A stretch of 64,000 nt of DNA from Rebecca billardiae RCC1528 (lineage: Eukaryota; Protista; Haptophyta), in assembly GCA_965240325.2 (NCBI GenBank), contig OZ251225.1:2480001-2544000 (forward strand). Reading direction: 5' to 3'. How positions within the stretch are numbered: the first letter of the stretch is position 1; every line of letters starts with the position of its first letter. A program made the position numbers and the translations under genes. This document shows, piece after piece, positions 13,417-50,206 of this stretch. A model generated the notes under the pieces. The model saw only the letters and a list, made by a program, of their open reading frames with translations, searched no databases and was not told the DNA's origin.

Positions 13417-16400
13417 TCAGCGAAGGGTGCAGACGCCGAGGAAGCGCACAACGGGCGAGATGATGCGCAGCGAGATGAATTGCTGCACGCCCTTCGGCAG
13501 GCTCGCCAGCGCGTATCTCGCGAGCGGCGAGATGAACGCGACGGCGGGCTCGAAGATGAGCAGCTTGAGCACGCACGAAGTCACGAGCGCCACGAGCAGC
13601 GGGCCCGTCCACGTGTTCAGGTCTCGGAGGATGGGGTTGAAGAGCGAGTACAGGATGAGCAGCGCGTACATGCACAGCCCGAGCAGGGCGTGCACGCTCC
13701 ACGCGAGGACCAGCTTCCACCGGCGCGGGCGCGACCACCACAGCTGCGCAATCTTGAGCGACTTGTCGTCGATGCGCGAGTACGCCTCCACCTCGCTGAT
13801 GTCGGCGACGCCCGCAGGCAGCCGGCGGCGGCGCGAGGGCGAGGGCGGCGGCGCGGCGGCGGCGGTCGAGCCGCCGCCGTCCACCCAGATGTTCTCCTCC
13901 GGCGCGGGCGCCTCGGACGCGGATGCCACCGGCGAGGCGGGCAGCAGACGCGCTGGTGGCTGCCGCTTGAACGCGGCGAGCAGCTGCGCGCGCGCCACGT
14001 CCGGCTCGCAGAAGAGGTCGTCGGTGGTGATGCGCCGGCCGTCGACAAACGGCGAGCCAAACGGCACGGCGAAGACCATGTTCGACTGCTTCTTCGACAG
14101 CCGCGCCGCGGCCTTGGGCTTGATGTGGTAGTAGCGCGTGGCCACCCGGTCCGCGTGCGCGTCGGCCGCCTGGTACACGAGCTGCGCCTGCACGAAGCGC
14201 AGGTCGGGCACGTGCTCCGGACGGTACTCGGCGTGCGGGCTCTCTGCAGCCTCGGCCGCGTCCTCGGCAGCGGCCGAGCCGCGCCGTTGGCGCGGCGTCG
14301 GCATGATCGTGCCAATCACGCGGTCGACGAGGCCGCGGCGCGCCGCCATCGCGGCGCGCTGCTCGAGGAAGCGCTGCCGCGCCACCTCGGTCGCGTCCGC
14401 CACGCCCACGCGCACGAAGAAGCCCACCATCTCGCCGCGGCGCGTGTGCACGGCCATCAGCGCCTTGGCGGGCATGCGGATTGGCGCGCGCGAGCCCATC
14501 TCCGCAATCTCAGCGCCGTTGCGCGGCGCGATGCCCACCTTGGACGGGCAGACGTACAGCAGCTTGTGCGCGCTCGACAGCACCGCGAGCGGCACGCTGC
14601 TGCCGTCGTCGCTCAGCCCGGCGATCTTGCCGCTGCGCTCGGACGCGGACGCGCCCTCCGACGTCTCCGACGCCGTGTCCGCGCGCGAGCTCGTGCGGGC
14701 GGTGAGCGCGCGCCGGGCCGACGACGTGTCCGAGTCGTCGTCGGCGATCAGCTCTTCGATCAGGTCGCGCCAGTCCTCCGGCATGCCGAGCTGCGACGCG
14801 CGCCGGTTGCGCTCCGCCAGGATGGCCTCCTCCGGCTCGCCCTCGTCGTCCGAGTCGGACGCCGCGCCGCCGGGCACGCCGTGCGTGTGCGCCCGGACCG
14901 GAGCGGTGCGGTCGGTGACTGGGCCAGCCACCTGGACCGCGCGCGCCGCGAGGCGCGAGACGCGCCGGCAGCGCGCCGCCAGGATGAGCTCCTCCAACTC
15001 GCCATCGTCCTCCGAGTCGGACGCCGCGGCGGGCGCGCTGTTGGACGGCCGCGGGGCCGGGACGACGCGGTCGGCGGTCGAGCTGGCCGCCTGCTCGCGC
15101 GCGCGCGCCGCCAGCGCGGGCCCAAAGCGCAAGACCCTCGGCCGCGGCGGGCTTGGCGGCGGCGACGGCGCGGGCACGCCCGAAGGCCCGCGCTCGTCGG
15201 CCGAAGCCGCATCGATGTCGTGATCGTCCACCGGCAAGACGCGCGCCCCGCTGCTCGCGCGTGCCGGGCTCAGACCGACTGCCGCAGGCTCCTGCGCCTG
15301 CAGCAGCCCGGCGAGCGCGCCGGCTGGCATCGAGTTGGAGCGCCTCATCGGGCGTCGGCGCGAGGGGTGCGTCGGCGGGCTCGGCGGCGGCGACGGCGGC
15401 GTCGGCGGCGGCAGCCGCGTGCGCGCCATGCGCCGCGCGGGCTCGGAGTCGCGCTCGTCGTCCGAGTCGCCCGGCGAGATGCGCGCACCGCGCTTGAGCA
15501 TCGCCGCCCTGAGCTCGCCGCCGCCCATCGAGTGCGCCTTTGCGAGCAGGCGCGATGGCCGTGGCGGGCTCGGCGGCGGCGATGGCGCGGGCGCGGGCGG
15601 CGGCGGCACCACGGCCGTCATCGGCATCTCCTCGCGCTTGCGGATCGACAGCCGGAACGGCAGCGCGGCGCGGCAGCAGCAGGCGCACGCGCAGAGCCGC
15701 GTCCACAGCGACTGCCGCTTGAGCTCGCGGTTGTACTTTTTGATAATCCGGTGCTTGAGCCGCGCGAGCGGGCGGCGCCGGTTCGCCCAGCGGAAGAGGA
15801 AGTGGATGGCGAACTCGAAGGGCACGGCGAGACCGACGGTGAGCAGCGCCAGCGTGAGCACGTCGCGCGCCAGCCAGGACTCCTGCCCGATGCACGCGAC
15901 CGCGACCAGCAGCTGCGCGAGCAGCGTGTTGTACAGCACGGTGACGCGCTGCCGCGAGGTGACGAGCTCGCCCGGCAGCCGCGTGAGCCACCACGAGAAG
16001 GTCGAGTGCGCGAGCAGCGAGGCGCCCAGCGCGTGGCACAGCCCGGCGTCCTCCTTGCGCTTCCACAGCGGCACGAACGGCTCGCGCTCGACGTGCCGGT
16101 CGTGAATGTGCGCGCAGTAGTAGAGCGAGACGTACGTGATCAGCAGGAAGAACAGGAGCACCTGCGCCGTGTACGCGAAGGCCAGGGAGGAGTCGAGCCT
16201 CACCGCCTGCGCGTCGAGCGGCTGGCCGTCCGCCGCGACGTTCGGATCGACGGACAACTCGGGCTCGGCGCGGTACACGGCGATGAAGTCGGTGAGGTGC
16301 GTGCACTCGCACGTTGTGACGTCGCTGAACGCGTCGCCCGCGTCCACGCAGCCCTCGCTGCCCCACGCGTCGCCCGCCCAGAAGCGGCAGCTGAAGCCCT

Positions 16401-19400
16401 CCGCGTCCTCGTCGCCCGCCGGCAGGATCTTCGGGTCGACCGGGAGATCGATGCGCACGATCGGCGGGAGCTCGCCCGCGGCGGTGAACTGCGTGAAGTC
16501 GATGGCGAGCGGCGCGCCGTTGAGCCACACGTTCACGCTCGTGAGCGAGGCTGCCATCCCGTACCCGTTGAGGTTGCTGAACGCGCGGAAGTTCTTCTCC
16601 CACAGCACGACCGCCACGTGCAACGAGTCGAGCTGCGACGCGTTGGTCGCGTTGAGCAGCCCGCGGCCCAGCATGAACTCGAGCGTGGCCACGGGGATAG
16701 TGAAGGTGGCGTGGGCGAGGGCGTCCCCCACCATCACCTCGGGCGAGTCGACCACAATGTCGGCCAGCCCGAACGTCGCCGGGTGGACGTGCTGGACCAC
16801 GACGGCCGCGCTGCCGTACACCGTGTCCACCGTCTCGCGCAGCTGGGAGCCCGCGCGCAGCGCGCTCAGCTGGCTCGAGATGAACGAGTCCACCGCCTCG
16901 TTGATCTGGTCGGCGCGGTAGCTCGCCTCGCCGTACGCCTCGTCTGCGCCGCCGGGGCCGCCGTCCACGCCGCCGAGGCTCGCGCTGGAGGCGTCGGTCG
17001 TCTCGTCCGGCAGCACGCCCAGGTCGAGCAGCGCCTCCACCGCCTCCTCGATCCAGTCGCCGGGCGGAGGGGGCGAGGGCGGCGGGCTTGGCGGCGGCGA
17101 GGGCGGTGGCGAGGGTGGCGGCGCAGGGCCACCAGGGCCGCCGCCACCTTCCGCGGGCGGCGGAGGCGAGGGCGGTGGCGAGGGTGGCGGCGCAGGGCCA
17201 CCAGGGCCGCCGCCACCTTCCGCGGGCGGCGGAGGCGAGGGCGGTGGTGACGGAGGCGGCGGCGGGCTCGGCGGCGGCGCCGGCGGCGGCGAGGGCGGTG
17301 GCGAGGGTGGCGGCGCAGGGCCACCAGGGCCGCCGCCACCTTCCGCGGGCGGCGGCGGCGAGGGCGGTGGCGAGGGTGGCGGCGCAGGGCCGCCAGGGCC
17401 GCCGCCACCTTCCGCGGGCGGTGGGGGCGAGGGCGGTGGTGACGGAGGCGGCGGAGGCGGCGGGCTCGGCGGCGGCGGGCTCGGCGGAGGCATCGGAGGA
17501 GGCGACGGCGGCGGCGGCGGTGGAGGGCTCGGCGGCGGCGGGCTCGGCGGGGGCATCGGAGGCGGCGACGGCGGCGGCGGCGGTGGAGGGCTCGGCGGCG
17601 GCGGGCTCGGCGGCGGCATCGGTGGCGGCGACGGCGGCGGCGGCGGTGGCGGGCTGGGAGGTGGCGGGCTTGGCGGCGGCATGGGCGGAGGCGAGGGCGG
17701 CGGCGGCGGTGGAGGGCTCGGCGGCGGCGGGCTGGGTGGCGGGCTCGGCGGCGGCGATGGTGGTGGTGGCGGCGGCGGACTCGGCGGTGGCGGGCTTGGA
17801 GGGGGAGAAGGCGGCGGTGACGGTGGAGGCGGCGGAGGAGGGCTCGGCGGTGGCGGACTCGGCGGTGGAGATGGCGGCGGCGATGGCGGTGGTGGCGGCG
17901 GCGGGCTCGGCGGCGGCGGGCTGGGCGGCGGGCTCGGCGGCGGCGATGGTGGTGGTGGCGGCGGCGGACTCGGTGGTGGCGGGCTTGGAGGGGGAGAAGG
18001 CGGCGGTGACGGTGGAGGCGGCGGAGGAGGGCTCGGTGGTGGCGGACTCGGCGGTGGAGATGGCGGCGGCGATGGCGGTGGTGGCGGCGGCGGGCTCGGC
18101 GGCGGCGGGCTGGGCGGCGGGCTCGGCGGCGGCGATGGTGGTGGTGGCGGCGGCGGACTCGGTGGTGGCGGGCTTGGAGGGGGAGAAGGCGGCGGTGACG
18201 GTGGAGGCGGCGGAGGAGGGCTCGGTGGTGGCGGACTCGGCGGTGGAGATGGCGGCGGCGATGGCGGTGGTGGCGGCGGCGGGCTCGGCGGCGGCGGGCT
18301 GGGCGGCGGGCTCGGCGGCGGCGATGGTGGTGGTGGCGGCGGCGGACTCGGTGGTGGCGGGCTTGGAGGGGGAGAAGGCGGCGGTGACGGTGGAGGCGGC
18401 GGAGGAGGGCTCGGTGGTGGCGGACTCGGCGGTGGAGATGGCGGCGGCGATGGTGGTGGTGGCGGCGGCGGGCTCGGCGGCGGCGGGCTGGGCGGCGGGC
18501 TCGGCGGCGGCGATGGTGGTGGTGGCGGCGGCGGACTCGGTGGTGGCGGGCTTGGAGGGGGAGAAGGCGGCGGTGACGGTGGAGGCGGCGGAGGAGGGCT
18601 CGGTGGTGGCGGACTCGGCGGTGGAGATGGCGGCGGCGATGGCGGTGGTGGCGGCGGCGGGCTCGGCGGCGGCGGGCTGGGCGGCGGGCTCGGCGGCGGC
18701 GATGGTGGTGGTGGCGGCGGCGGACTCGGCGGTGGCGGGCTTGGAGGGGGAGAAGGCGGCGGTGACGGTGGAGGCGGCGGAGGAGGGCTCGGTGGTGGCG
18801 GACTCGGCGGTGGAGATGGCGGCGGCGATGGCGGTGGTGGCGGCGGCGGGCTCGGCGGCGGCGGGCTGGGCGGTGGGCTCGGCGGCGGCGATGGTGGTGG
18901 TGGCGGCGGCGGACTCGGTGGTGGCGGGCTTGGAGGGGGAGAAGGCGGCGGTGACGGTGGAGGCGGCGGAGGAGGGCTCGGTGGTGGCGGACTCGGCGGT
19001 GGAGATGGCGGCGGCGATGGCGGTGGTGGCGGCGGCGGGCTCGGCGGCGGCGGGCTGGGCGGCGGGCTCGGCGGCGGCGATGGTGGTGGTGGCGGCGGCG
19101 GACTCGGCGGTGGCGGGCTTGGAGGGGGAGAAGGCGGCGGTGACGGTGGAGGCGGCGGAGGAGGGCTCGGTGGTGGCGGACTCGGCGGTGGAGATGGCGG
19201 CGGCGATGGCGGTGGTGGCGGCGGCGGGCTCGGCGGCGGCGGGCTGGGCGGCGGGCTCGGCGGCGGCGATGGTGGTGGTGGCGGCGGCGGACTCGGTGGT
19301 GGCGGGCTTGGAGGGGGAGAAGGCGGCGGTGACGGTGGAGGCGGCGGAGGAGGGCTCGGTGGTGGCGGACTCGGCGGTGGAGATGGCGGCGGCGATGGCG

Positions 19401-20919
19401 GTGGTGGCGGCGGCGGGCTGGGCGGCGGCGGGCTGGGCGGCGGGCTCGGCGGCGGCGATGGTGGTGGTGGCGGCGGCGGACTCGGCGGTGGCGGGCTTGG
19501 AGGGGGAGAAGGCGGCGGTGACGGTGGAGGCGGCGGAGGAGGGCTCGGTGGTGGCGGACTCGGCGGTGGAGATGGCGGCGGCGATGGCGGTGGTGGCGGC
19601 GGCGGGCTCGGCGGCGGCGGGCTGGGCGGCGGGCTCGGCGGCGGCGATGGTGGTGGTGGCGGCGGCGGACTCGGCGGTGGCGGGCTCGGAGGGGGAGAAG
19701 GCGGCGGTGACGGTGGAGGCGGCGGAGGAGGGCTCGGTGGTGGCGGACTCGGCGGTGGAGATGGCGGCGGCGATGGCGGTGGTGGCGGCGGCGGGCTCGG
19801 CGGCGGCGGGCTGGGCGGCGGGCTCGGCGGCGGCGAGGGAGGTGGTGGCGGCGGCGAGCTGGGCGGCGGCGGCGACGGCGGCGGCGAGGGAGGAGGTGGC
19901 GGCGGCGGGCTCGGCGGCGGCGGGCTCGGCGGCGGGCTCGGCGGCGGCGATGGCGGTGGCGGCGGTGGCGAGCTGGGCGGTGGTGGCGACGGCGGCGGCG
20001 ATGGCGGCGGCGGTGGCGGCGGAGATGGCGGCGGCGGGCTGGGAGGCGGGCTCGGCGGTGGCGAAGGCGGTGGCGGAGGCGGCAAGCTGGGCGGCGGCGG
20101 CGACGGCGGCGGCGATGGCGGCGGCGGTGGTGGCGGAGATGGCGGCGGCGGGCTTGGAGGCGGGCTCGGCGGCGGCGATGGCGGTGGCGGCGGTGGCGAG
20201 CTGGGCGGTGGTGGCGACGGCGGCGGTGATGGCGGCGGCGGCGGCGGCGGGCTTGGCGGCGGAGGGCTTGGCGGCGGGCTTGGCGGCGGGCTTGGCGGTG
20301 GCGGCGGTGGCGAGCTGGGCGGCGGCGGCGACGGCGGCGGCGATGGCGGCGGAGGCGGCGGCGGAGATGGCGGCGGCGGGCTTGGCGGCGGGCTCGGCGG
20401 CGGCGACGGCGGTGGCGGCGGTGGCGATCTGGGCGGTGGTGGCGAAGGCGGCGGTGATGGCGGCGGGGGCGGCGGCGGGCTGGGCGGCGGCGGGCTTGGA
20501 GGCGGGCTCGGCGGCGGCGACGGCGGTGGCGGCGGTGGCGAGCTGGGCGGCGGCGGCGACGGCGGCGGCGAGGGAGGAGGTGGCGGCGGCGGGCTCGGCG
20601 GCGGCGGGCTCGGCGGCGGGCTCGGCGGCGGCGATGGCGGTGGCGGCGGTGGCGAGCTGGGCGGTGGCGGCGACGGCGGCGGCGATGGCGGCGGTGGCGG
20701 CGGCGGGCTCGGCGGCGGCGGGCTGGGCGGCGGGCTCGGCGGCGGCGACGGCGGTGGCGGTGGAGGCGAGCTGGGTGGCGGAGGTGACGGTGGTGGCGAT
20801 GGCGGCGGCGGCGGCGGCGGGCTCGGCGGCGGCGGCGACGGAGGCGGGCTCGGAGGCGGCGACGGCGGGGGCGGCGGTGGCGAGCTGGGCGGCGGCGGCG
20901 ACGGCGGTGGCGATGGCGG

Positions 20920-20954
<35 letters not shown>

Positions 20955-21945
20955 GAGGCGGGCTCGGCGGCGGCGACGGCGGTGGCGGCGGTGGCGAGCT
21001 GGGCGGCGGCGGCGACGGCGGCGGCGAGGGAGGAGGTGGCGGCGGCGGGCTCGGCGGCGGCGGGCTCGGCGGCGGGCTCGGCGGCGGCGATGGCGGTGGC
21101 GGCGGTGGCGAGCTGGGCGGTGGCGGCGACGGCGGCGGCGATGGCGGCGGTGGCGGCGGCGGGCTCGGCGGCGGCGGGCTGGGCGGCGGGCTCGGCGGCG
21201 GCGACGGCGGTGGCGGTGGAGGCGAGCTGGGTGGCGGAGGTGACGGTGGTGGCGATGGCGGCGGCGGCGGCGGCGGGCTCGGCGGCGGCGGCGACGGAGG
21301 CGGGCTCGGAGGCGGCGACGGCGGGGGCGGCGGTGGCGAGCTGGGCGGCGGCGGCGACGGCGGTGGCGATGGCGGCGGCGGCGGCGGCGGGCTCGGCGGC
21401 GGCGGCGACGGAGGCGGGCTCGGAGGCGGCGACGGCGGGGGCGGCGGTGGCGAGCTGGGCGGCGGCGGCGACGGCGGCGGCGATGGCGGCGGAGGCGGCG
21501 GCGGGCTCGGCGGTGGCGGAGACGGAGGCGGGCTCGGCGGCGGCGACGGCGGTGGCGGCGGTGGCGAGCTGGGCGGCGGCGGCGACGGCGGCGGCGATGG
21601 CGGCGGAGGCGGCGGCGGGCTCGGCGGTGGCGGAGACGGAGGCGGGCTCGGCGGCGGCGACGGCGGTGGTGGCGGTGGCGAGCTGGGCGGCGGCGGCGAC
21701 GGCGGTGGCGAGGGCGGCGGCGGCGGCGGCGGAGATGGCGGCGGCGGGCTTGGCGGCGGGCTCGGCGGCGGCGACGGCGGCGGCGGCGGAGGCGAGCTAG
21801 GCGGTGGTGGCGACGGCGGCGGTGATGGCGGCGGTGGCGGCGGCGGGCTCGGCGGTGGCGGGCTGGGCGGAGGGCTCGGCGGCGGCGACGGCGGTGGCGG
21901 AGGCGGCGAGCTGGGCGGCGGCGGCGACGGCGGCGGCGATGGCGG

Positions 21946-21978
<33 letters not shown>

Positions 21979-23718
21979 GGGCGGCGGGCTCGGCGGCGGC
22001 GACGGCGGTGGCGGCGGTGGCGAGCTGGGTGGCGGAGGTGACGGTGGTGGCGATGGTGGCGGGGGCGGCGGCGGGCTCGGCGGTGGCGGGCTTGGGGGCG
22101 GACTCGGCGGCGGCGACGGCGGTGGCGGAGGCGGCGAGCTGGGTGGCGGCGGCGACGGCGGCGGCGATGGCGGCGGCGGCGGCGGCGGGCTCGGCGGAGG
22201 CGGGCTGGGCGGCGGGCTCGGCGGCGGCGACGGCGGTGGTGGCGGCGGCGAGCTGGGCGGCGGCGGCGACGGCGGCGGCGATGGCGGCGGGGGCGGCGGC
22301 GGAGATGGCGGTGGCGGAGACGGAGGCGGGCTCGGAGGCGGCGACGGCGGTGGCGGCGGTGGCGAGCTGGGCGGTGGAGGCGACGGCGGTGGCGAGGGCG
22401 GCGGTGGCGGCGGCGGAGATGGCGGCGGCGGGCTTGGTGGCGGGCTCGGCGGCGGCGACGGCGGTGGCGGAGGCGGCGAGCTGGGCGGTGGTGGCGACGG
22501 CGGCGGCGATGGCGGCGGAGGCGGCGGCGGGCTCGGCGGTGGCGGGCTGGGCGGAGGGCTCGGCGGCGGCGACGGCGGTGGCGGAGGCGGCGAGCTGGGC
22601 GGCGGCGGCGACGGCGGCGGCGATGGCGGCGGGGGCGGTGGCGGAGATGGCGGCGGCGGAGACGGAGGCGGGCTCGGAGGCGGCGACGGCGGTGGCGGCG
22701 GTGGCGAGCTGGGTGGTGGTGGCGACGGCGGCGGCGATGGCGGCGGCGGCGGCGGCGGGCTCGGCGGTGGCGGAGACGGAGGCGGGCTCGGAGGCGGCGA
22801 CGGCGGTGGCGGCGGTGGCGAGCTGGGCGGTGGTGGCGACGGCGGCGGTGATGGCGGCGGCGGCGGTGGGGGGCTCGGCGGTGGCGGGCTGGGCGGCGGG
22901 CTCGGCGGTGGCGACGGCGGTGGCGGAGGCGGCGAGCTGGGCGGTGGTGGCGATGGCGGCGGCGATGGCGGCGGGGGCGGTGGCGGAGATGGCGGTGGCG
23001 GAGACGGAGGCGGGCTCGGAGGCGGCGACGGCGGTGGCGGCGGAGGCGAGCTGGGTGGCGGAGGTGACGGTGGTGGCGATGGCGGCGGCGGCGGCGGCGG
23101 GCTCGGCGGCGGCGGAGACGGAGGCGGGCTCGGAGGCGGCGACGGCGGTGGCGGCGGAGGCGAGCTGGGTGGCGGAGGTGACGGCGGTGGCGATGGCGGC
23201 GGCGGCGGCGGCGGGCTCGGCGGCGGCGGAGACGGAGGCGGGCTCGGAGGCGGCGACGGCGGTGGCGGCGGAGGCGAGCTGGGTGGCGGAGGTGACGGTG
23301 GTGGCGATGGCGGCGGCGGCGGCGGCGGGCTCGGCGGCGGCGGAGACGGAGGCGGGCTCGGAGGCGGCGACGGCGGTGGCGGCGGTGGCGAGCTGGGCGG
23401 CGGCGGCGACGGCGGCGGCGATGGCGGCGGAGGTGGCGGCGGGCTCGGCGGTGGCGGCGACGGAGGCGGGCTCGGCGGCGGCGACGGCGGTGGCGGCGGA
23501 GGCGGGCTCGGCGGCGGCGGGCTGGGCGGCGGGCTCGGCGGCGGCGACGGCGGTGGTGGCGGTGGCGAGCTGGGCGGTGGTGGCGACGGCGGCGGCGATG
23601 GCGGCGGCGGCGGCGGCGGGCTCGGCGGTGGCGGGCTTGGCGGAGGGCTCGGCGGCGGCGACGGCGGTGGCGGCGGTGGCGAGCTGGGCGGTGGTGGCGA
23701 CGGCGGCGGCGATGGCGG

Positions 23719-23751
<33 letters not shown>

Positions 23752-23832
23752 GGGCGGCGGGCTCGGCGGCGGCGACGGCGGTGGCGGCGGTGGCGAGCTG
23801 GGCGGTGGTGGCGACGGCGGCGGCGATGGCGG

Positions 23833-23865
<33 letters not shown>

Positions 23866-23946
23866 GGGCGGCGGGCTCGGCGGCGGCGACGGCGGTGGCG
23901 GCGGTGGCGAGCTGGGCGGTGGTGGCGACGGCGGCGGCGATGGCGG

Positions 23947-23981
<35 letters not shown>

Positions 23982-24402
23982 GCGGAGGGCTCGGCGGCGG
24001 CGACGGCGGAGGCGGCGGTGGCGAGCTGGGCGGTGGTGGCGACGGCGGCGGCGATGGCGGCGGTGGCGGAGGCGGGCTCGGCGGCGGCGGAGACGGAGGC
24101 GGGCTCGGAGGCGGCGACGGCGGTGGCGGAGGCGGCGAGCTGGGCGGTGGTGGCGACGGCGGCGGTGATGGCGGCGGCGGCGGCGGCGGGCTCGGCGGTG
24201 GCGGGCTGGGCGGAGGGCTCGGCGGCGGCGACGGCGGTGGCGGAGGCGGCGAGCTGGGCGGCGGAGGCGACGGCGGCGGCGATGGCGGCGGCGGCGGCGG
24301 CGGGCTCGGCGGTGGCGGGCTGGGCGGAGGGCTCGGCGGCGGCGACGGCGGTGGCGGAGGCGGCGAGCTGGGCGGCGGCGGCGACGGCGGCGGCGATGGC
24401 GG

Positions 24403-24435
<33 letters not shown>

Positions 24436-24972: not shown

Positions 24973-25005
<33 letters not shown>

Positions 25006-38602: not shown

Positions 38603-38635
<33 letters not shown>

Positions 38636-38830: not shown

Positions 38831-38863
<33 letters not shown>

Positions 38864-39400: not shown

Positions 39401-39433
<33 letters not shown>

Positions 39434-41338: not shown

Positions 41339-41371
<33 letters not shown>

Positions 41372-41566
41372 GGGCGGCGGGCTCGGCGGCGGCGACGGCG
41401 GTGGCGGCGGTGGCGAGCTGGGCGGTGGTGGCGACGGCGGCGGCGATGGCGGCGGCGGCGGCGGCGGGCTCGGCGGTGGCGGGCTTGGCGGCGGGCTCGG
41501 CGGCGGCGACGGCGGTGGCGGCGGTGGCGAGCTGGGCGGTGGTGGCGACGGTGGCGGCGATGGCGG

Positions 41567-41599
<33 letters not shown>

Positions 41600-42364
41600 G
41601 GGCGGCGGGCTCGGCGGCGGCGACGGCGGTGGTGGCGGTGGCGAGCTGGGCGGTGGTGGCGACGGCGGCGGCGATGGCGGCGGCGGCGGCGGCGGGCTCG
41701 GCGGTGGCGGGCTGGGCGGAGGGCTCGGCGGCGGCGACGGCGGTGGCGGCGGTGGCGAGCTGGGCGGTGGTGGCGACGGCGGCGGCGATGGCGGCGGCGG
41801 CGGCGGCGGGCTCGGCGGTGGCGGAGACGGCGGCGGGCTTGGGGGCGGCGACGGCGGTGGCGGCGGTGGCGAGCTGGGCGGTGGTGGCGACGGAGGCGGC
41901 GATGGCGGCGGCGGCGGCGGCGGGCTCGGCGGTGGCGGAGACGGCGGCGGGCTTGGGGGCGGCGACGGCGGTGGCGGCGGTGGCGAGCTGGGCGGTGGTG
42001 GCGACGGCGGCGGCGATGGCGGCGGCGGCGGCGGCGGGCTCGGCGGTGGTGGGCTTGGCGGAGGGCTCGGCGGCGGCGACGGCGGTGGCGGCGGTGGCGA
42101 GCTGGGCGGTGGTGGCGACGGCGGCGGCGATGGCGGCGGCGGCGGCGGCGGGCTCGGCGGTGGCGGAGACGGCGGCGGGCTTGGGGGCGGCGACGGCGGT
42201 GGTGGCGGTGGCGAGCTGGGCGGTGGTGGCGACGGCGGCGGCGATGGCGGCGGCGGCGGCGGCGGGCTCGGCGGTGGCGGGCTTGGCGGAGGGCTCGGCG
42301 GCGGCGACGGCGGTGGCGGCGGTGGCGAGCTGGGCGGTGGTGGCGACGGCGGCGGCGATGGCGG

Positions 42365-42397
<33 letters not shown>

Positions 42398-42592
42398 GGG
42401 CGGCGGGCTCGGCGGCGGCGACGGCGGTGGCGGCGGTGGCGAGCTGGGCGGTGGTGGCGACGGCGGCGGCGATGGCGGCGGCGGCGGCGGCGGGCTCGGC
42501 GGTGGCGGGCTTGGCGGCGGGCTCGGCGGCGGCGACGGCGGTGGCGGCGGTGGCGAGCTGGGCGGTGGTGGCGACGGTGGCGGCGATGGCGG

Positions 42593-42625
<33 letters not shown>

Positions 42626-43162
42626 GGGCGGCGGGCTCGGCGGCGGCGACGGCGGTGGTGGCGGTGGCGAGCTGGGCGGTGGTGGCGACGGCGGCGGCGA
42701 TGGCGGCGGCGGCGGCGGCGGGCTCGGCGGTGGCGGGCTGGGCGGAGGGCTCGGCGGCGGCGACGGCGGTGGCGGCGGTGGCGAGCTGGGCGGTGGTGGC
42801 GACGGCGGCGGCGATGGCGGCGGCGGCGGCGGCGGGCTCGGCGGTGGCGGAGACGGCGGCGGGCTTGGGGGCGGCGACGGCGGTGGCGGCGGTGGCGAGC
42901 TGGGCGGTGGTGGCAACGGAGGCGGCGATGGCGGCGGCGGCGGCGGCGGGCTCGGCGGTGGCGGAGACGGCGGCGGGCTTGGGGGCGGCGACGGCGGTGG
43001 CGGCGGTGGCGAGCTGGGCGGTGGTGGCGACGGCGGCGGCGATGGCGGCGGCGGCGGCGGCGGGCTCGGCGGTGGCGGAGACGGCGGCGGGCTTGGGGGC
43101 GGCGACGGCGGTGGCGGCGGTGGCGAGCTGGGCGGTGGTGGCGACGGCGGCGGCGATGGCGG

Positions 43163-43195
<33 letters not shown>

Positions 43196-44530
43196 GGGCG
43201 GCGGGCTCGGCGGCGGCGACGGCGGTGGCGGCGGTGGCGAGCTGGGCGGTGGTGGCGACGGCGGCGGCGATGGCGGCGGCGGCGGCGGCGGGCTCGGCGG
43301 TGGCGGGCTTGGCGGCGGGCTCGGCGGCGGCGACGGCGGTGGCGGCGGTGGCGAGCTGGGCGGTGGTGGCGACGGTGGCGGCGATGGCGGCGGCGGCGGC
43401 GGCGGAGATGGCGGCGGCGGGCTGGGCGGCGGGCTCGGCGGCGGCGACGGCGGTGGTGGCGGTGGCGAGCTGGGCGGTGGTGGCGACGGCGGCGGCGATG
43501 GCGGCGGCGGCGGCGGCGGGCTCGGCGGTGGCGGGCTGGGCGGAGGGCTCGGCGGCGGCGACGGCGGTGGCGGCGGTGGCGAGCTGGGCGGTGGTGGCGA
43601 CGGCGGCGGCGATGGCGGCGGCGGCGGCGGCGGGCTCGGCGGTGGCGGGCTGGGCGGCGGGCTCGGCGGTGGCGACGGCGGTGGCGGCGGTGGCGAGCTG
43701 GGCGGTGGTGGCGACGGCGGCGGCGAGGGCGGCGGCGGCGGCGGCGGAGATGGCGGTGGCGGGCTCGGGGGCGGGCTCGGCGGTGGCGAAGGCGGTGGCG
43801 GCGGTGGCGAGCTGGGTGGTGGTGGCGACGGCGGCGGCGATGGCGGCGGCGGCGGCGGCGGGCTCGGCGGTGGCGGAGACGGCGGCGGGCTTGGGGGCGG
43901 CGACGGCGGTGGCGGCGGTGGCGAGCTGGGCGGTGGTGGCGACGGCGGCGGCGAAGGCGGCGGCGGCGGCGGCGGAGATGGCGGTGGCGGGCTCGGGGGC
44001 GGGCTCGGCGGCGGCGACGGCGGTGGCGGCGGTGGCGAACTGGGCGGTGGCGGCGACGGCGGCGGCGATGGCGGCGGCGGCGGCGGCGGGCTCGGCGGTG
44101 GCGGGCTGGGCGGCGGGCTCGGCGGTGGCGACGGCGGTGGCGGCGGTGGCGAGCTGGGCGGTGGTGGCGACGGCGGCGGCGATGGCGGCGGCGGCGGCGG
44201 CGGGCTCGGCGGTGGTGGGCTTGGCGGAGGGCTCGGCGGCGGCGACGGCGGTGGCGGCGGTGGCGAGCTGGGCGGTGGTGGCGACGGCGGCGGCGATGGC
44301 GGCGGCGGCGGCGGCGGGCTCGGCGGTGGCGGAGACGGCGGCGGGCTTGGGGGCGGCGACGGCGGTGGTGGCGGTGGCGAGCTGGGCGGTGGTGGCGACG
44401 GCGGCGGCGATGGCGGCGGCGGCGGCGGCGGGCTCGGCGGTGGCGGGCTTGGCGGAGGGCTCGGCGGCGGCGACGGCGGTGGCGGCGGTGGCGAGCTGGG
44501 CGGTGGTGGCGACGGCGGCGGCGATGGCGG

Positions 44531-44563
<33 letters not shown>

Positions 44564-44758
44564 GGGCGGCGGGCTCGGCGGCGGCGACGGCGGTGGCGGC
44601 GGTGGCGAGCTGGGCGGTGGTGGCGACGGCGGCGGCGATGGCGGCGGCGGCGGCGGCGGGCTCGGCGGTGGCGGGCTTGGCGGCGGGCTCGGCGGCGGCG
44701 ACGGCGGTGGCGGCGGTGGCGAGCTGGGCGGTGGTGGCGACGGTGGCGGCGATGGCGG

Positions 44759-44791
<33 letters not shown>

Positions 44792-45784
44792 GGGCGGCGG
44801 GCTCGGCGGCGGCGACGGCGGTGGTGGCGGTGGCGAGCTGGGCGGTGGTGGCGACGGCGGCGGCGATGGCGGCGGCGGCGGCGGCGGGCTCGGCGGTGGC
44901 GGGCTGGGCGGAGGGCTCGGCGGCGGCGACGGCGGTGGCGGCGGTGGCGAGCTGGGCGGTGGTGGCGACGGCGGCGGCGATGGCGGCGGCGGCGGCGGCG
45001 GGCTTGGCGGCGGCGGGCTGGGCGGTGGGCTCGGCGGCGGCGACGGCGGTGGTGGCGGTGGCGAGCTGGGCGGTGGTGGCGACGGCGGCGGCGATGGCGG
45101 CGGCGGCGGCGGCGGGCTCGGCGGTGGCGGAGACGGCGGCGGGCTTGGGGGCGGCGACGGCGGTGGCGGCGGTGGCGAGCTGGGCGGTGGTGGCGACGGC
45201 GGCGGCGATGGCGGCGGCGGCGGCGGCGGGCTCGGCGGTGGCGGGCTTGGCGGAGGGCTCGGCGGCGGCGACGGCGGTGGCGGCGGTGGCGAGCTGGGCG
45301 GTGGTGGCGACGGCGGCGGCGATGGCGGCGGCGGCGGCGGCGGGCTCGGCGGTGGCGGAGACGGCGGCGGGCTTGGGGGCGGCGACGGCGGTGGCGGCGG
45401 TGGCGAGCTGGGCGGTGGTGGCGACGGCGGCGGCGATGGCGGCGGCGGCGGCGGCGGGCTCGGCGGTGGCGGAGACGGCGGCGGGCTTGGGGGCGGCGAC
45501 GGCGGTGGCGGCGGTGGCGAGCTGGGCGGTGGTGGCGACGGCGGCGGCGATGGCGGCGGCGGCGGCGGCGGGCTCGGCGGTGGCGGAGACGGCGGCGGGC
45601 TTGGGGGCGGCGACGGCGGTGGCGGCGGTGGCGAGCTGGGCGGTGGTGGCGACGGCGGCGGCGATGGCGGCGGCGGCGGCGGCGGGCTCGGCGGTGGTGG
45701 GCTTGGCGGAGGGCTCGGCGGCGGCGACGGCGGTGGCGGCGGTGGCGAGCTGGGCGGTGGTGGCGACGGCGGTGGCGAAGGCGG

Positions 45785-45817
<33 letters not shown>

Positions 45818-48796
45818 GGGCGGCGGGCTGGGCGGCGGCGACGGCGGTGAGGGCTGCGCAGGCGGCGGGCTGGGCTCGGGCAGCGTGTTGTCGAGCGGGC
45901 ACGGCCACGCGTTGTGCGTGTTGTCGAGCAGTATGTGCAAGCTCTGCACCGCCGCCTGGAAGTCATCGGGCGGCAGCTGCATCGCGTCCTGCACCATCGT
46001 GATCACCTCGGCCGTGGTGTACGGGTACCGCACGTCAGAGTGGCCCGCGTTGAGCACGGCCGCGGCAGCGGTGCGCGAGAGCTGCCACCAGTTGTTGCCG
46101 AGGGCGTTGTTCGATTCGCCGTCATCCTGCATCACCTCGAGCAGCTCCCACGCGCCCGCGGCGCCTGCGCGGTCGAACCAGCCCGACTCTGCGGGCGTGA
46201 GCGCGAAGTGCGCGTTGAACGCGCTCGAGGGCGAGATGGCGGCGGGCCCCCACTGCGGGAGGTGGTTCTTCCAGTAGCCGGGCGTGCAAGCCTCGTAGCC
46301 CCCGGCGGGCGGAGGGCTGCTGAGGGGCGAGGGCGACGAGGAGGGCGATGCTGGAGGCGGTGGCGAGCTGGGCGGTGGTGGCGACGGCGGCGGCGACGGC
46401 GGCAGTGGCGGCGGCGGTGATAGCGGCGGCGGGCTGGGCGGCGGGCTCGGCGGCGGCGACGGCGGTGGCGGCGTGGGCGGCGGCGACGGGCTCGGCGGTG
46501 GCGGCGAGCCGTGCGCACCGATCGGCGGCGGCGGGCTCGGCGGCGGCGACGGCGGTGTCGGCGGTGGCGAGCTAGGAGGTGGCGACGGCGGCGGCGATGG
46601 CGGCGTTGGCGGCGGCGCAGATGGCGGCGGCGGGCTGGGCGGCGGGCTGGGCGGCGGCGACGGCGGTGGCGAGCTTGGCGGCGACGGCAGCGAGGGCTGC
46701 GCAGGCGGCGGGCTGGGCTCGGGCAGCGTGTTGTCGAGCGGGCACGGCCACGCGTTGTGCGTGTTGTCGAGCAGTATGTGCAAGCTCTGCACCGCCGCCT
46801 GGAAGTCCTCGGGCGGCAGCTGCATCGCGTCCTGCACCATCGTGATCACCTCCGCCGTGGTGTACGGGTACCGCACGTCAGAGTGGCCCGCGTTGAGCAC
46901 GGCCGCGGCAGCGGTGCGCGAGAGCTGCCACCAGTTGTTGCCGAGGGCGTTGTTCGATTCGCCGTCATCCTGCATCACCTCGAGCAGCTCCCACGCGCCC
47001 GCGGCGCCTGCGCGGTCGAACCAGCCCGACTCTGCGGGCGTGAGCGCGAAGTGCGCGTTGAACGCGCTCGAGGGCGAGATGGCGGCGGGCCCCCACTGCG
47101 GGAGGTGGTTCTTCCAGTAGCCGGGCGTGCACGCCTCGTAGCCCTCGGCGGGCGGAGGGCTGCTGAGGGGCGAGGGCGATGGCGGTGGCGGCGAGGGCGG
47201 CGGATTCGGCTGGCAGCCGCCGCACGCGCCCCACGCCTCCTCGTCCGTGCACAGCGTGCCCGCGTCCACACCGCCGACCAGGCACTGCGCGGTCGGGCTG
47301 TTCGTCTCGGCGATCGCCTCGCACTTGCCCGCGGTGAGCGCGGCGTTGTCCACAAAGCGGAGGCAGCCGTCGAGGTCGAGCGCGGCCGGGCCGCGCAGGA
47401 GCACCGCGCCGCCCTCGTTGGCCGCAGTGTTGTTCAGGAACGTCGCGTCCTCCAGAAGCACGCGCGCGCCCGTGCCCGTGGCGAAGAGCGCGCCGCCGTC
47501 CCTGCTCGCCGCGCACTCGGACAGCTCGGTGTCGAGCAGCCGCAGCTCGCCCCAGTGCACGTACACGCAGCCGCCGTCCTCACTCGCGCCCGAGCTGGAG
47601 AAGCGGCAGCCCGTGCACGTGCTGTGGTCGTCCTGCGTGGAGAACCACGCGCCGCCCAGCTCGGACGCGCAGTCCTCGAACGTGCCGCCCGTCACGGTGA
47701 GCGCGCTCTGGTCGGAGAAGAGGCAGCCGCCGGAGGCCGAGGCCGTGAGGCGCGCAAAGCTGCAGCTCGTGAGAGCGATCTGGGAGTCGTACGCGTAGAG
47801 GCCTGCGCCCTGGCTGCTCGCCGTGCCGTCGCGGAACTCGCAGTCGCTCAGCTCGATCTCCTCGCTCTTGCTCACGTACACGCCCGAGCCCTGGCCGCCC
47901 GCGTTGCCCGTGAAGGTGCAGCCGCTGATCTGGACGCGCCGCGCGTTCTCGAGCTCGACGGCGCCGTGCGCGGCGTTGGCGAAGGTGAGGCCGTGCAGCA
48001 GCAGGTCGAACGGCGAGTTGCCCCTCTTGTTGCCCACGCGCAGCAGGGGCTCGCTGTCCATGCCCGCCGCCGGGCTCAGCACGCACGCTCCCGAGGGGCA
48101 CGTGACCGAGACATCCTTCTTCTTGTCGATGCGCAGCTGCTCCGGCACAAGGTACGTGCCGGCGGCGAGCACGAGCGTGTCGCAGCCCTTGAGGTCCTCG
48201 AACGCGTCGACGAGGCTGAGCACCGAGGCGACCGGCACGGTGCGGCAGTTCCCGCCGCCGCCGCCGCCGCTGGAGAGCGCGACGACGGCCGGCGGCGGCG
48301 AGGGCGGCGGCGAGGGCGAGGGCGGCGGCGCGAGCGTCAGCACGCCCTCGAGGTTGTCAAAGTGACTGCCGCCGTCGCCCGTGCCGCACACGCCCTGGAT
48401 CTCGTCGTACAGCGAGCTGCGGTCCTCGAGCGAGCCGCGGATGACCACCTGCGCGGAGCACCCCGCGCCCGAGTAGAAGTCGTGCGTGAACGAGTCGTAG
48501 TTGAGCACGTCCATGCTGAGCTCCATCGGCAGGTACACGCGCGACCAGATCTGATCGTACGCGCCGCCGCCGACCGAGGCGAAGAACTTGATGCTGACGC
48601 CCTTCAGGTCGGCGGAGCCGCCGTAGGACGTGGGCGTGAAGGCGAAGGACACGGCCACCTCGTTGATCACGCCCGTCGTCGCCAGCTCCACGTACTCGAA
48701 GTTGTCCGTCGGGTGCGGCTCGCGCTCGCACTCGGAGCCACTGAGCAGCGAGGTGAACACCGCCGGGTCGTCAGGCTCGAGGACGACGTCGCAGCT

Positions 48797-48831
<35 letters not shown>

Positions 48832-50206
48832 AGGGCGGCGGGCTCGGCAGCGGCGGCGGCGACGGGCTCGGCGGCGGCGGCGGCGGCGAGGGCGGCGGGC
48901 TCGGCGGCGAGGGCGGCGGCATCGGCTCGCCCGTGGACGGCGTGAGCCACAGCACGCCCTCGAGGTTGTCAAAGTGGGACGTCTGGTTGTTCGTGCCGCA
49001 CACGCCCTGGATCTCGTCGTAGACGTGCGCGCGGTCCTCGAGCGCCGCGCGGATGATCACCTGCTTGCCGCACGGCACGCCCGCCGGGAACGCGTACGTG
49101 AACTCGCCGTGGTTGAGCTCGTCGAGGTTCATGTGCCCAGGCAGGTAGATGCGCGACCAGATCTGCTCGAAAGCGGCCCCGCCGATCGAGGCGAAGAACT
49201 TCATGCTGACGCCGATGCTCTCGGTGAACGTGCCGAAGGACGTGGGCGTGAAGGCGAAGGACACGGCCACCTCGTTGATCACGCCCGTCGTCGCCAGCTC
49301 CACGTACTCGAAGTTGTCCGTCGGGTGCGGCTCGCGCTCGCACTCGGAGTTGTTGAGCAGCGTGTTGAACGACACGGGGTCGGTGGGATGGAGGACGACG
49401 ATGCACAGCGGCGGCGACGGCGGCGACGGCGGCGGTGGCGGTGAGGGCGGCGGGGCCGGCGGCGGCGGCGGCGACGGGCTCGGCGGCGGCGGCGGCGGCA
49501 ACGGTGGTGGCGACGGCAGCGGCGGCGGCGACGGCGGCGGATTCGGTGGCGCGGATGGCGGCTGGGGGCTGGGCGGCGGCGGCGGGGAGGGCGGAGGCGA
49601 CGGAGGCGACGGAGGCACCGCCTCGCCCGAGGGCGGGATCAGCCGCGCCGTGCCCTCCAGATTGTCAAAGTGGTGGCTGCCATTGCCGCTCGTCGCGCAC
49701 ACGCCCACAATCTCGTCCGTCGTGAGCGAGCGGTCCTCGAGCGCGCCGCGGATCACGACGTCCGCGTCGCAGGACACGCCCGGCGCGAACGTGTACACAA
49801 ACGAGCGGTAGTTCATCTGGTCAAAGCAGATCTTGTCCGGGCCCGTGCCGGGCAGGAAGATCTGCGACCAGATCTCGTCGAAGGGCCCGCCGGCGAGCGA
49901 GGCGAAGAACTTCATGCTGACGCCCTTGCTCTGGTTGAACGTCTCGTACGACGTCGGCCAGAAGGCGAATGAGACGGCGAGCTCGTTCATCACGCTCGTC
50001 GTCGCGAGGACGATGTACTCAAAGTGGTCCGTCGGGTGCAGCTGACGCTCGCACTCCGAGCCGGAGAGGAGCGTGTTGAACGTCGCCGGGTTGGTGGGCT
50101 CCACGACCACGCGGCACGCGCCCGTGACGTTCGTCCCGGTGCCGTTCGTCGACGCGGCGACCGCAGGGAGGAGAAGCGCCCCAAGCGCGACGAGCGCGCG
50201 CACCAT
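13417..50206 (-). CDS. Giant (~12,194 aa) extensin-like GAIN/GPS polycystin-1-like membrane protein; exons 50206-27239, 27128-27106, 27010-13417
   Basis: Signal peptide MVRALVALGALLLPAVAA. GTGAG...GCAG introns at 27129-27238 and 27011-27105 join the 7668-aa and 4562-aa ORFs in frame (22968+23+13594=36585 nt). GPS motif CRFW...W...GC...C.CTHLTDF (16285-16389). PKD1-like TM segments follow it. Confidence 0.85.
17063..26480 (-). repeat. Coding Ser-Pro array 2 (~3,140 aa): 114-bp/38-aa units (~19845-26480), 63-bp/21-aa units in a 189-bp higher-order repeat (~17460-19845), then PAEGGGGPGGPAPPPS repeats
   Basis: Marker gggggagaag recurs every 189 bp from 17801 to 19691 (11 copies). gagctggg recurs at a 114-bp period. 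Confidence 0.95.
28041..45852 (-). repeat. Coding Ser-Pro array 1 (~5,900 aa, ~155 x 114-bp units; SSP6SP3SP3SP4SP7SP3SP4)
   Basis: gagctggg at 30219 and 30333 (114-bp period). Translation is nearly invariant despite third-position variation. Confidence 0.97.
45849..47179 (-). repeat. Recent internal duplication of the EACTPGYWKNH...SRTAAAAVLNA domain (45849-46336 and 46692-47179)
   Basis: ~488-bp copies 843 bp apart, differing at only about four positions by eye. Confidence 0.93.

Follow-up and report, generated by a model that had tools for sequence, protein, structure and literature searches.

A Giant Haptophyte Gene Predicted to Encode a 12,194-Residue Stalked Membrane Glycoprotein With a GAIN Domain and a Polycystin-1-Like Base

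Gene Structure and Reading Frame

The window analysed here is a 64-kb stretch, without any N, from the GC-rich genome of the haptophyte Rebecca billardiae RCC1528, probably a pavlovophyte. Its minus strand contains a gene that runs from 50206 to 13417 in three exons (27239-50206, 27106-27128, and 13417-27010). The coding sequence of 36,585 nt corresponds to a product of 12,194 aa and 1.19 MDa with 62% Pro and 18% Ser; an earlier sequence-only reading of the locus gave ~12,200 aa. All the domain elements listed in that reading could be found, on the minus strand. The gene ends with TGATGA at 13417, and the neighbouring next gene is an unrelated lipase.

27239..50206, minus strand: exon 1, 7,656 codons, with a phase-0 end (...HTPCTK) followed by a GTGAGC donor
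27129..27238, minus strand: intron 1, 110 nt, GT...AG, from the sequence and the paralog alignment
27106..27128, minus strand: mini-exon, 23 nt, which together with the first base of exon 3 encodes ANCGTLGG
27011..27105, minus strand: intron 2, 95 nt, GTGAGC...CAG, from the sequence and the paralog alignment
13417..27010, minus strand: exon 3, ending at the TGA TGA stop

Exon 1 was defined from the ORF list, the translation and the junction DNA, and an identical exon end is present in the paralog L002 from the same sample. In L002 this exon end is followed by the same 23-nt mini-exon, flanked by AG and GT, and by the next acceptor, and the introns around the mini-exon have diverged from those of the giant gene. 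Since L002 keeps the exon end, the mini-exon and the acceptor, it supports the join of the two long ORFs. Both the logic of the sequence and the comparison with the paralog support the proposal of one spliced frame from a signal peptide to a transmembrane (TM) anchor, but the two ORFs join in frame across two introns and not one, with the reading frame restored solely via the mini-exon. Splicing in vivo would be expected to follow the same pattern.

If intron 1 were retained, or if the transcript ended near 27200, the locus would instead give a secreted glycoprotein of 7,668 aa, with the downstream half separate or silent. Read-through of the first donor does meet a stop after 12 codons. Yet in the downstream ORF (ORF B) no start codon is accompanied by a signal peptide, even though this ORF encodes more than 3,000 aa of ectodomain. 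The mini-exon and acceptor kept in L002 connect the middle domain with the domain after it, and array 2 and the anchor are still under protein-level constraint. We regard two separate products as highly improbable.

The Distal Head

The N-terminal part of the protein consists of a signal-peptide-like segment, three repeats, a β-helix and two domains with a CTPGYWKNH motif.

50150..50206, minus strand: signal-peptide-like N-terminus, MVRALVALGALLLPAVAAS, with the ATG at 50206, identified by eye in the translation
48323..50149, minus strand: three head repeats of ~165 aa with 4 conserved Cys and short Ser-Pro linkers between them, from alignment
47207..48259, minus strand: right-handed parallel β-helix (Pfam PF13229 Beta_helix, E 5.3e-12, aa 740-886)
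46724..47149, minus strand: CTPGYWKNH domain 1, helical, Cys-bracketed and similar to the PDF1 C-terminal domain (AF2 model, pLDDT 82)
45881..46306, minus strand: CTPGYWKNH domain 2, 99% identical to domain 1 in both protein and DNA

The head repeats are 58-60% identical to each other and have no Pfam match at E ≤ 10; searches in the Atlas gave weak leads only. Both of the CTPGYWKNH domains previously noted were found, and their near identity indicates from the sequence that domain 2 is a recent duplicate of domain 1. When the model of this domain was searched against Swiss-Prot with Foldseek, the sole significant match was Arabidopsis Protodermal factor 1 (Q9S728, residues 188-300), with a probability of 1.00, a TM of 0.65, an E of 3.6e-3 and 17% identity (next match E 0.6). 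Atlas structures matched at TM 0.73-0.80, including a cluster carrying PF27764 (TM 0.73) and also bacterial surface-repeat proteins. By these structure matches the domain has the PDF1_C (PF27764) fold, with the Cys-bracketed helical character.

The Ser-Pro Arrays

Two long Ser-Pro arrays make up most of the remaining ectodomain.

28028..45874, minus strand: Ser-Pro array 1, aa 1445-7393, ~155 units of 38 aa with higher-order repeats
17056..26484, minus strand: Ser-Pro array 2, aa 7840-10982, 38-aa units passing into 21-aa units

The repeat unit is SP3-SP3-SP4-SP7-SP3-SP4-S-SP6. In array 1 the identical 38-aa sequence is found in 148 of 153 units, written in 57 different DNA versions, and only 6 of 5,940 residues are neither Ser nor Pro; TRF gave periods of 114 and 342 nt. 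Array 2 ends with four Met-containing and four Gly-rich units. The units are nearly identical as protein and ~7% different as DNA, and the variation across ~200 units is synonymous, including AGC/TCN serine swaps. Diversity at codon positions 1, 2, and 3 is 0.021, 0.021, and 0.219, respectively. The arrays are therefore under protein-level selection, as nearly all DNA variation sits at third codon positions, and judged by their sequence they are not chance low-complexity stretches. A scan for the consensus donors GTGAG, GTAAG, and GTGCG found none inside the arrays.

Runs with at least 90% Ser/Pro comprise ~9,300 residues, and the rods account for 76% of the chain. At 0.31 nm per residue this corresponds to a contour of ~2.9 μm if fully extended, in line with the rod length estimated before. 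If expressed as predicted, the protein would rank with the longest polypeptide chains known apart from the PKZILLA synthases of haptophytes and the muscle proteins of animals, and its rod would surpass all other predicted polyproline-II rods in length.

The longest exact repeat in array 1 is 1,925 bp, and the array length therefore rests wholly on the long-read assembly. Repeats of this size (up to 1.9 kb), the many genes with similar Ser-Pro arrays in the genome, and a middle-domain module that can start a gene alone, as in L002, could all be taken to mean that the assembly inflated the arrays or fused two stalk genes within a Ser-Pro array, so that no product of 12,194 aa exists. Several observations speak against such an artefact. 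Of ~96 unit versions at the DNA level, just 2 occur in both arrays, and the higher-order pattern differs between the arrays. Within array 1, both halves contain unit versions 0, 4, 9, 10, and 16-19. The junction between array 1 and the middle domain is clean and in frame with no signal-peptide remnant, and the window contains no N. An assembly error of this kind is very unlikely in our judgement.

The Middle Node

Between the two arrays lies a globular domain followed by a third PDF1_C-like domain.

27239..28045, minus strand: middle globular domain, aa 7388-7656, with a 66%-identical paralog (P0001)
26461..27009, minus strand: third, divergent PDF1_C-like domain, 48% identical to domain 1, with both Cys kept

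The middle domain has no Pfam match, and a search for the window's own middle region did not find it among the called proteins of the public collection. Feature matches in the Atlas were to haptophyte clusters (0.92-0.93) and to CshA_NR2/GbpC adhesin domains (0.89-0.91), and the domain possibly has a lectin-like adhesin fold. The third CTPGYWKNH-like domain had been anticipated and is indeed present, but the GYWKNH motif itself is missing from it.

The GAIN Domain and the Five-Helix Base

The C-terminal part of the protein contains a GAIN domain, TM helices and a cytosolic domain.

16270..17064, minus strand: GAIN domain, with the GPS motif at 16285-16389 (Pfam GPS, E 1.7e-5)
15805..16185, minus strand: TM1, a ~55-aa cytosolic loop, TM2 and TM3, from hydropathy and a model (pLDDT 75-94)
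13954..14496, minus strand: conserved cytosolic α/β domain in the ~700-aa TM3-TM4 loop (pLDDT 81-88)
13552..13695, minus strand: TM4 and TM5, then a C-terminal helix, from hydropathy, the model and the polycystin-1 alignment

The Pfam GPS match, the structural matches and the family profile agree that the membrane-proximal fold is a GAIN domain, as had been proposed. The top seven Foldseek matches to this region in the PDB are adhesion-GPCR GAIN domains, VIA gave Z 12-15, and the family profile matched the PDB with an E of 9e-10. The predicted cleavage site HL|T is intact at aa 11236|11237 (HLT at aa 11235-11237), 36 residues before TM1. Hydropathy analysis gave five clear TM helices and a possible sixth, consistent with the earlier count of about five.

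The closest structural match to the TM1-5 bundle among 48,161 chains was polycystin-1 (8z6b_A; Z 16.5, rmsd 3.7 Å), with an alignment covering 184 residues (PC1 residues 3068-3610) at 18% identity. The next helical-bundle match was far lower (~Z 6.7). The base model, which has a mean pLDDT of 56, thus resembles polycystin-1 TM1-5 in structure, a likeness that is not proof of homology, and a profile search against the PDB gave no sequence-level match to the membrane part of polycystin-1. The cytosolic α/β domain has no Pfam match, and its motifs are conserved with the relatives P0002 and P0003.

Paralogs, Relatives and Origin

P0002 and P0003 share the entire module of GPS, five TM helices and cytosolic domain with the giant gene, and the loop motifs WWLTRLPGE, YVCP...GEMVGFFV, and LWWS.P..WK are common to all three. 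Among relatives the HL|T motif is kept, and the cytosolic domain and loop motifs are conserved at 29-35% identity. In paralogs from the same sample, including L008 and L010, the same TM module is preceded by a poly-Pro end, TIG, REJ, and GPS. In L003, a Ser-Pro run lies immediately upstream of the GAIN domain. REJ is present in L008 and in the relative P0013.

The same genome contains many genes with a stalk and a GPS base, with similar Ser-Pro arrays and varied heads. Sequence comparison places the gene in a lineage-specific family of stalked receptors that are polycystin-1-like but have no channel. The family is undescribed, and among its members seen to date this gene is the largest. With stalks of 0.2 to ~3 μm and different heads, the family offers a natural length series for probing rod-based sensing or holding at a distance.

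L002 opens with a signal peptide of its own that is followed at once by the middle domain, and its start coincides with the point at which array 1 stops in the giant gene. This suggests that the giant gene arose by fusion. The partners were most likely a gene with a head and a rod and an L002-like gene, in which a signal peptide leads into the middle domain, a PDF1_C-like domain and further parts.

Proposed Architecture and Mechanism

We consider it probable, with some reserve, that the locus is a real and intact nuclear gene for one 12,194-aa, type-I-like stalked membrane glycoprotein of the channel-less polycystin-1-like receptor family. At its tip this protein would carry a head cluster of three novel Cys-containing domains, the β-helix and two PDF1_C-like domains. 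Below this would follow a Ser-Pro rod of ~5,950 residues, the middle node with its adhesin-like and third PDF1_C-like domains, and a second rod of ~3,100 residues. At the membrane we would expect the GAIN domain with its HL|T autoproteolysis site, then the polycystin-1-type five-helix bundle with the cytosolic domain between TM3 and TM4.

Hydroxylation and O-glycosylation of the prolines may turn the arrays into semi-rigid polyproline-II rods, which would keep the binding domains up to micrometres off the membrane. A literature search found no hydroxyproline glycoproteins documented for this haptophyte lineage; haptophytes possess a GT47 whose nearest counterpart is the extensin arabinosyltransferase ExAD (PMC5371791). 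Self-cleavage of the GAIN domain would leave an extracellular fragment of 11,236 aa held non-covalently on a membrane fragment of 958 aa. Pulling on the stalk might then free the extracellular fragment or uncover a tethered strand, an event that could be relayed by the cytosolic domain together with the five-helix base.

The same protein might instead be a purely structural fibre, either a surface or flagellar hair or a component of a thick barrier or spacer glycocalyx, with the base acting as anchor and release point and not as a sensor. This would fit the large share of the chain taken up by the rods, and a Pfam search of the cytosolic part gave no match to an EF-hand, IQ, or further signalling domain. 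The numerous paralogs, with their differing heads, would jointly make a coat, and in Mstax of Chlamydomonas a polycystin-type anchor likewise holds a structural shaft. On the other hand, relatives conserve the HL|T motif, and the conservation of the cytosolic domain and loop motifs suggests an intracellular partner. We find a fibre without sensory function unlikely.

The most far-reaching version of the receptor reading is that each molecule forms a two-tier filament of ~3 μm, a single-molecule cell or flagellar hair whose load is read by GAIN dissociation at the channel-less base, and which together with the other heads of the paralogs would constitute a new kind of long-range contact or mechanosensory organ in protists. 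We think it quite unlikely that all of this holds.

Comparison With Known Systems

The sequence-only reading could name no protein in which these features had been described together. This is overstated, as the gene is one of many of its kind in its own genome and Chlamydomonas Mstax is a near-analogue, in which lectin domains and a heavily glycosylated Hyp-rich shaft of ~8,000 residues (0.30-0.32 nm rise per residue) are fixed to the membrane by a PKD2-like anchor (bioRxiv 10.1101/2024.12.24.630281). The concept is therefore not unprecedented. Compared by description, both are giant single chains with distal N-terminal binding or lectin domains, a long extended shaft and a polycystin-family anchor with a cytosolic part. 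The Mstax anchor is, however, PKD2-like and of the channel type, with no GAIN/GPS in the part of the description available, whereas the giant gene has a GAIN/GPS and a PC1-type five-helix base. The Mstax repeat, described as Hyp11-(X2Hyp)n-Hyp12 and sheathed by Mst1, also differs from the 38-aa Ser-Pro unit, and neither this repeat nor the channel-type anchor was found in the giant gene. Compared with Mstax as described, the giant gene has two rods and a middle node and is ~50% longer.

The earlier label of a polycystin-1-like anchor stands for the TM1-5 arrangement but not for strict family membership. As in polycystin-1, PKD1-like proteins and sea-urchin REJ proteins, a GAIN domain with HL|T is positioned directly before TM1 and the TM1-5 bundle can be aligned, and same-sample paralogs carry REJ and TIG before the same base. 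In the giant gene itself, Pfam gave no match for REJ in the ectodomain and none for PLAT/LH2 at E ≤ 0.1, the TM1-TM2 loop being merely ~55 aa. The six-helix TRP-like channel half is absent, as the ORF stops after TM5 and one further helix (polycystin-1 has eleven TM), and the TM3-TM4 loop is occupied by an unrelated conserved domain. Like adhesion GPCRs, the protein has a GAIN/GPS autoproteolysis module between an extensive adhesive ectodomain and its membrane portion, and their tethered-strand logic could by analogy apply here. There is no 7tm_2 match for a secretin-type 7TM, and five PC1-like helices are found instead. If true, the combination of GAIN autoproteolysis with a channel-free polycystin-1 N-terminal helix bundle in a haptophyte would bear on the evolutionary assembly of both polycystins and adhesion GPCRs.

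Ser-Pro(3-7) motifs throughout the rods, including the repeated Ser-Pro(3-5) motifs typical of extensins, resemble those of extensins and green-algal hydroxyproline-rich glycoproteins (HRGPs), and in the sexual agglutinins of Chlamydomonas a polyproline-II shaft likewise carries globular heads. Unlike those proteins, the giant gene has no Tyr cross-linking motifs (YXY, VYK), with no Tyr in either array, and it has an integral membrane anchor and is ~ten times longer. Its host is a haptophyte and not of the green lineage, and hydroxylation is predicted here.

In both PDF1 and the giant protein the PDF1 C-terminal domain follows a proline-rich region. The low identity sets the two apart, as does the occurrence of the domain three times inside a giant receptor. 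If the assignment is true, this plant epidermal domain would be tied to proline-rich surface proteins far beyond plants.

Two long open reading frames with a predicted mini-exon join

A 28-kb stretch of the window with 85–86% G+C and a strong GC skew is covered by two very long minus-strand ORFs, 50206..27200 (7,668 codons) and 27105..13417 (4,562 codons). Translation and Pfam analysis showed that the first ORF runs from a signal-peptide-like start through three ∼165-aa repeats with short Ser-Pro linkers and a right-handed β-helix (PF13229, E 5e-12) to two domains that begin with CTPGYWKNH, a near-pure Ser-Pro array and a 270-aa globular domain (the middle domain). In the second ORF, a diverged version of the CTPGYWKNH domain precedes another Ser-Pro array, a GPS-containing region and hydrophobic helices. 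The predicted gene is composed as follows:

27239–50206 (−), exon 1
28028–45874 (−), array 1 (aa 1445–7393)
27239–28045 (−), middle domain
27106–27128 (−), exon 2 (mini-exon)
13417–27010 (−), exon 3
17056–26484 (−), array 2 (aa 7840–10982)

The last codons of exon 1 read ...HTPCTK, in phase 0, and a GTGAGC donor (27238) comes next. A join by a single intron from this donor is ruled out, since the acceptor at 27011 would bring in one extra base and break the frame. The 23-nt segment 27128–27106, which has AG on one side and a second GTGAGC on the other, restores the reading frame exactly, and the join then reads ...HTPCTK-ANCGTLGG-RNIFFAGEST.... The predicted spliced CDS of 36,585 nt encodes 12,194 aa (1.19 MDa; 62% Pro and 18% Ser), with ∼9,300 residues held in Ser-Pro runs. 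Judged from the genomic sequence, the single spliced frame of ∼12,200 aa proposed in the sequence-only reading holds in its architecture, all observed elements of which are confirmed, and the gene model is refined to a predicted 12,194 aa with the 23-nt mini-exon.

The Ser-Pro arrays are under selection as protein

Tandem Repeats Finder gave array periods of 114 and 342 nt. Array 1 consists of ∼155 copies of one 38-aa unit; 148 of 153 units are identical as protein, with 57 DNA versions and a mean DNA identity of 92.6%. Across 204 units from both arrays the diversity at codon positions 1, 2, and 3 was 0.021, 0.021, and 0.219, and the variation at the first two positions was AGC/TCN serine switching only. 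Such synonymous-only, phase-specific variation points to selection on the translated Ser-Pro frame, unlike what is expected of a satellite, an intron or an antisense frame. It rules out that the arrays are introns or non-coding satellite and marks the antisense plus-strand ORFs over them as composition artefacts. No GTGAG, GTAAG or GTGCG donors were found within either array. Only 2 of ∼96 unit versions are common to arrays 1 and 2, and the higher-order pattern is distinct in each. Exact repeats reach 1,925 bp, so the arrays can be assembled only with long reads and their lengths are as assembled.

A paralog suggests a fusion history

A search of 5.8 billion clustered proteins with the middle domain returned one match, P0001 (66% identical), which is encoded on the 2.6-kb contig L002 from the Logan sample ERR14847148. 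The same sample gives a contig 100% identical to the lipase gene of the window.

L002:1441–2592, paralog gene; the contig stops 54 nt into the next exon

The paralog keeps the exon end TPCTK|GT, a counterpart of the 23-nt mini-exon (between CAG and GTGCG) and the acceptor followed by RNIFFAG, whereas the introns of the two genes have diverged. L002 supports, independently, the predicted mini-exon join of the two ORFs. Its signal peptide lies directly before the middle domain (...ARARA|QFPSCTP), and no Ser-Pro array is present in the 1.4 kb upstream of the gene. In the giant gene, array 1 passes straight into QFSSCTP at the residue that matches QFPSCTP of L002. No initiator or signal peptide was found in the downstream half (second ORF) of the giant gene. 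These observations also speak against two independent genes at the locus. The simplest reading of these sequences is a fusion of a head-plus-rod gene with an L002-type gene, and such a fusion would account for the unusual two-tier layout.

The membrane base resembles that of polycystin-1

The second ORF contains the GPS motif CRFW...C...CECTHLTDF (Pfam, E 1.7e-5), and hydropathy-type calls placed five hydrophobic helices around a ∼700-aa hydrophilic stretch (second-ORF residues):

3641–3668, 3721–3739, 3749–3767, helices before the hydrophilic stretch
4471–4489, 4500–4518, last two helices, after it

A first homology search with the C-terminal module gave no match, probably because the query opens with Ser-Pro words that swamped the candidates. 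Of 1.84 billion representatives, only 15 were recovered as relatives when the GAIN-to-TM3 region was used in an index-free HMMER search. The best two, the proteins P0002 and P0003, have the entire module in common with the giant gene: GPS, TM1, a WWLTRLPGE loop, TM2-3, the cytosolic motifs YVCP...GEMVGFFV and FVQ, LWWS.P..WK, and TM4-5. On the P0002 contig a Ser-Pro run adjoins the GAIN region on its upstream side. Other relatives are ERR14847148 paralogs, in which the same five-helix base follows a poly-Pro end, TIG, REJ, and GPS; their HLT codons are directly followed by an intron that is absent from the giant gene. Members of this poly-Pro/TIG/REJ/GPS family are:

L008:52–7385 (Logan ERR14847148)
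L010:2–3689 (Logan ERR14847148)
L003 (SRR30872635)

The last 1,198 residues were modeled with AlphaFold2 using 12 aligned relatives (m83dddd62c32b). The mean pLDDT of 56 is lowered by a disordered loop; the GAIN region, the helices and a cytosolic α/β domain are modeled well. With this model as query, the top seven Foldseek matches in the PDB were GAIN domains of adhesion GPCRs (E 3e-5 to 4e-4), and matches in AlphaFold DB and the Atlas were GPS, PKD/REJ-like, and adhesion-GPCR proteins. The family profile also matches the GAIN/GPS sequences of ADGRG6 and ADGRL3 (E 1e-9). In a Foldseek-independent search of 48,161 chains, polycystin-1 (8z6b_A) ranked first (Z 16.5, 184 residues, 18% identity), with model residues 274–1161 aligned to PC1 3068–3610 (TM1–TM5), while the next helical-bundle match reached only Z ∼6.7. 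The term polycystin-1-like, proposed earlier from sequence, is accordingly justified for the predicted GAIN domain plus five-helix bundle; the gene lacks PLAT, REJ, and the channel half and is for this reason not filed as a polycystin-1 family member. Further downstream exons supplying the channel half are ruled out by the TGATGA double stop that ends the second ORF at 13417, the AT-richer tail after it and the next gene, which encodes an unrelated secreted class-3 lipase and starts with a signal peptide of its own.

The HL|T triad is intact in the giant gene and in its relatives. Cleavage at the GPS, which we infer from this sequence, would leave an 11,236-aa extracellular and a 958-aa membrane fragment. 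The cytosolic α/β domain in the TM3–TM4 loop is confidently modeled and conserved:

13954–14496 (−), cytosolic α/β domain with the motifs YVCP, GEMVGFFV, and FVQ

The loop had no Pfam match at E ≤ 10, and the domain had no structural counterpart among the top matches. Residues 4–251 of the model, in the GAIN region, also match the axonemal doublet-microtubule chains 9fqr_Hn, 8glv_AE, and 9y6s at Z 10–12, which hints that an axonemal protein may contain a GAIN- or ZU5-like fold.

Domains of the head and the middle node

The CTPGYWKNH domain is a ∼135-aa unit between two invariant Cys residues. By sequence it is related only to a few small secreted proteins and to loci in Pontibacterium and an actinomycete MAG, and a scan of bacterial genomes with the domain alignment found only four loci, all from these two sources. 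For the structural model (pLDDT 82) the sole significant Swiss-Prot match was Arabidopsis Protodermal factor 1, in its C-terminal domain (probability 1.00, TM 0.65; next match E 0.6). Atlas matches at TM 0.73–0.80 include one cluster annotated with PF27764 (PDF1_C) and bacterial surface-repeat proteins; sequence and fold searches of the PDB gave nothing matching the domain. PDF1, too, is an extracellular protein rich in proline, so the pairing of a CTPGYWKNH-type domain with proline-rich sequence recurs. The second copy in the head is of recent origin:

45500–47400 (−), second CTPGYWKNH domain and flanking Ser-Pro linker, a recent ∼830-bp tandem duplication (identity 90% overall, 99% inside the domain)

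Language-model features of the middle domain matched haptophyte clusters at 0.92–0.93 and lectin-like domains of streptococcal adhesins (CshA_NR2, GbpC) at 0.89–0.91. The relation to such adhesins is a lead and not a demonstration. A metagenome scan with the middle-domain alignment found no relative. The head repeats, the middle domain and the L002 paralog had no Pfam match at E ≤ 10, and the three N-terminal repeats belong to no recognisable family.

Rod length and comparison with Mstax

In the ∼8,000-residue Mstax chain of Chlamydomonas, a Ser-Hyp segment is combined with lectin domains, a glycosylated Hyp shaft 660 nm long and a PKD2-like anchor. Mstax is a precedent for the giant protein, and the view that no described protein has this combination was overstated. 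The two differ in repeat unit, size and lineage, in layout (two rods with a middle node in the giant protein) and in anchor, which here is GAIN plus PC1-type five helices without a channel. The Mstax structure has 9.6 Å per three residues and 64 residues in 19.4 nm, which supports the 0.31 nm per residue used in the sequence-only reading. The computed rod contours are then ∼1.84 + 0.97 μm and the total contour is ∼2.9 μm, the greatest length that a semi-flexible chain could span. Since a haptophyte GT47 is closest to the extensin arabinosyltransferase ExAD (PMC5371791), Hyp-glycosylation of the stalk is plausible but unproven.

The proposal of a micron-scale, sheddable surface receptor is thus partly supported: the sequence bears out its architecture and polycystin-1-like base, and its physical and functional parts are still inference. 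The giant protein combines known kinds, a GAIN/polycystin-type anchor and a Hyp-type shaft. Our literature searches found no paper on GAIN or polycystin-like stalked proteins in haptophytes, and nothing relevant for polycystin with hydroxyproline-rich and GPS or for pavlovophyte hairs. Among the members found to date of a family that appears undescribed in the literature searched, the giant protein is the largest.

Genomic surroundings

The neighboring genes include one for a thylakoid-formation protein. The background G+C of the window is 65–72%. An origin from a GC-rich, probably pavlovophyte haptophyte fits the genome of Diacronema lutheri, which has 73% G+C and 45% single-exon genes (PMC8379373), and the haptophyte Atlas matches of the middle domain. 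Other features of the window are:

1281–4895 (+), 1,204-codon ORF with a histidine-kinase ATPase domain
6000–8000, G+C down to 51%, against the background
9870–10270, compound (TA)n/(CA)n microsatellite
52764–54428 (−), ORF joining a ShK toxin-like domain with an aldo/keto reductase domain
57414–59951 (−), OSCA/TMEM63-like protein (PHM7_cyt, RSN1_7TM, weak anoctamin match)

The last of these genes, from a family that includes mechanosensitive channels, lies ∼7 kb from the start of the giant gene.
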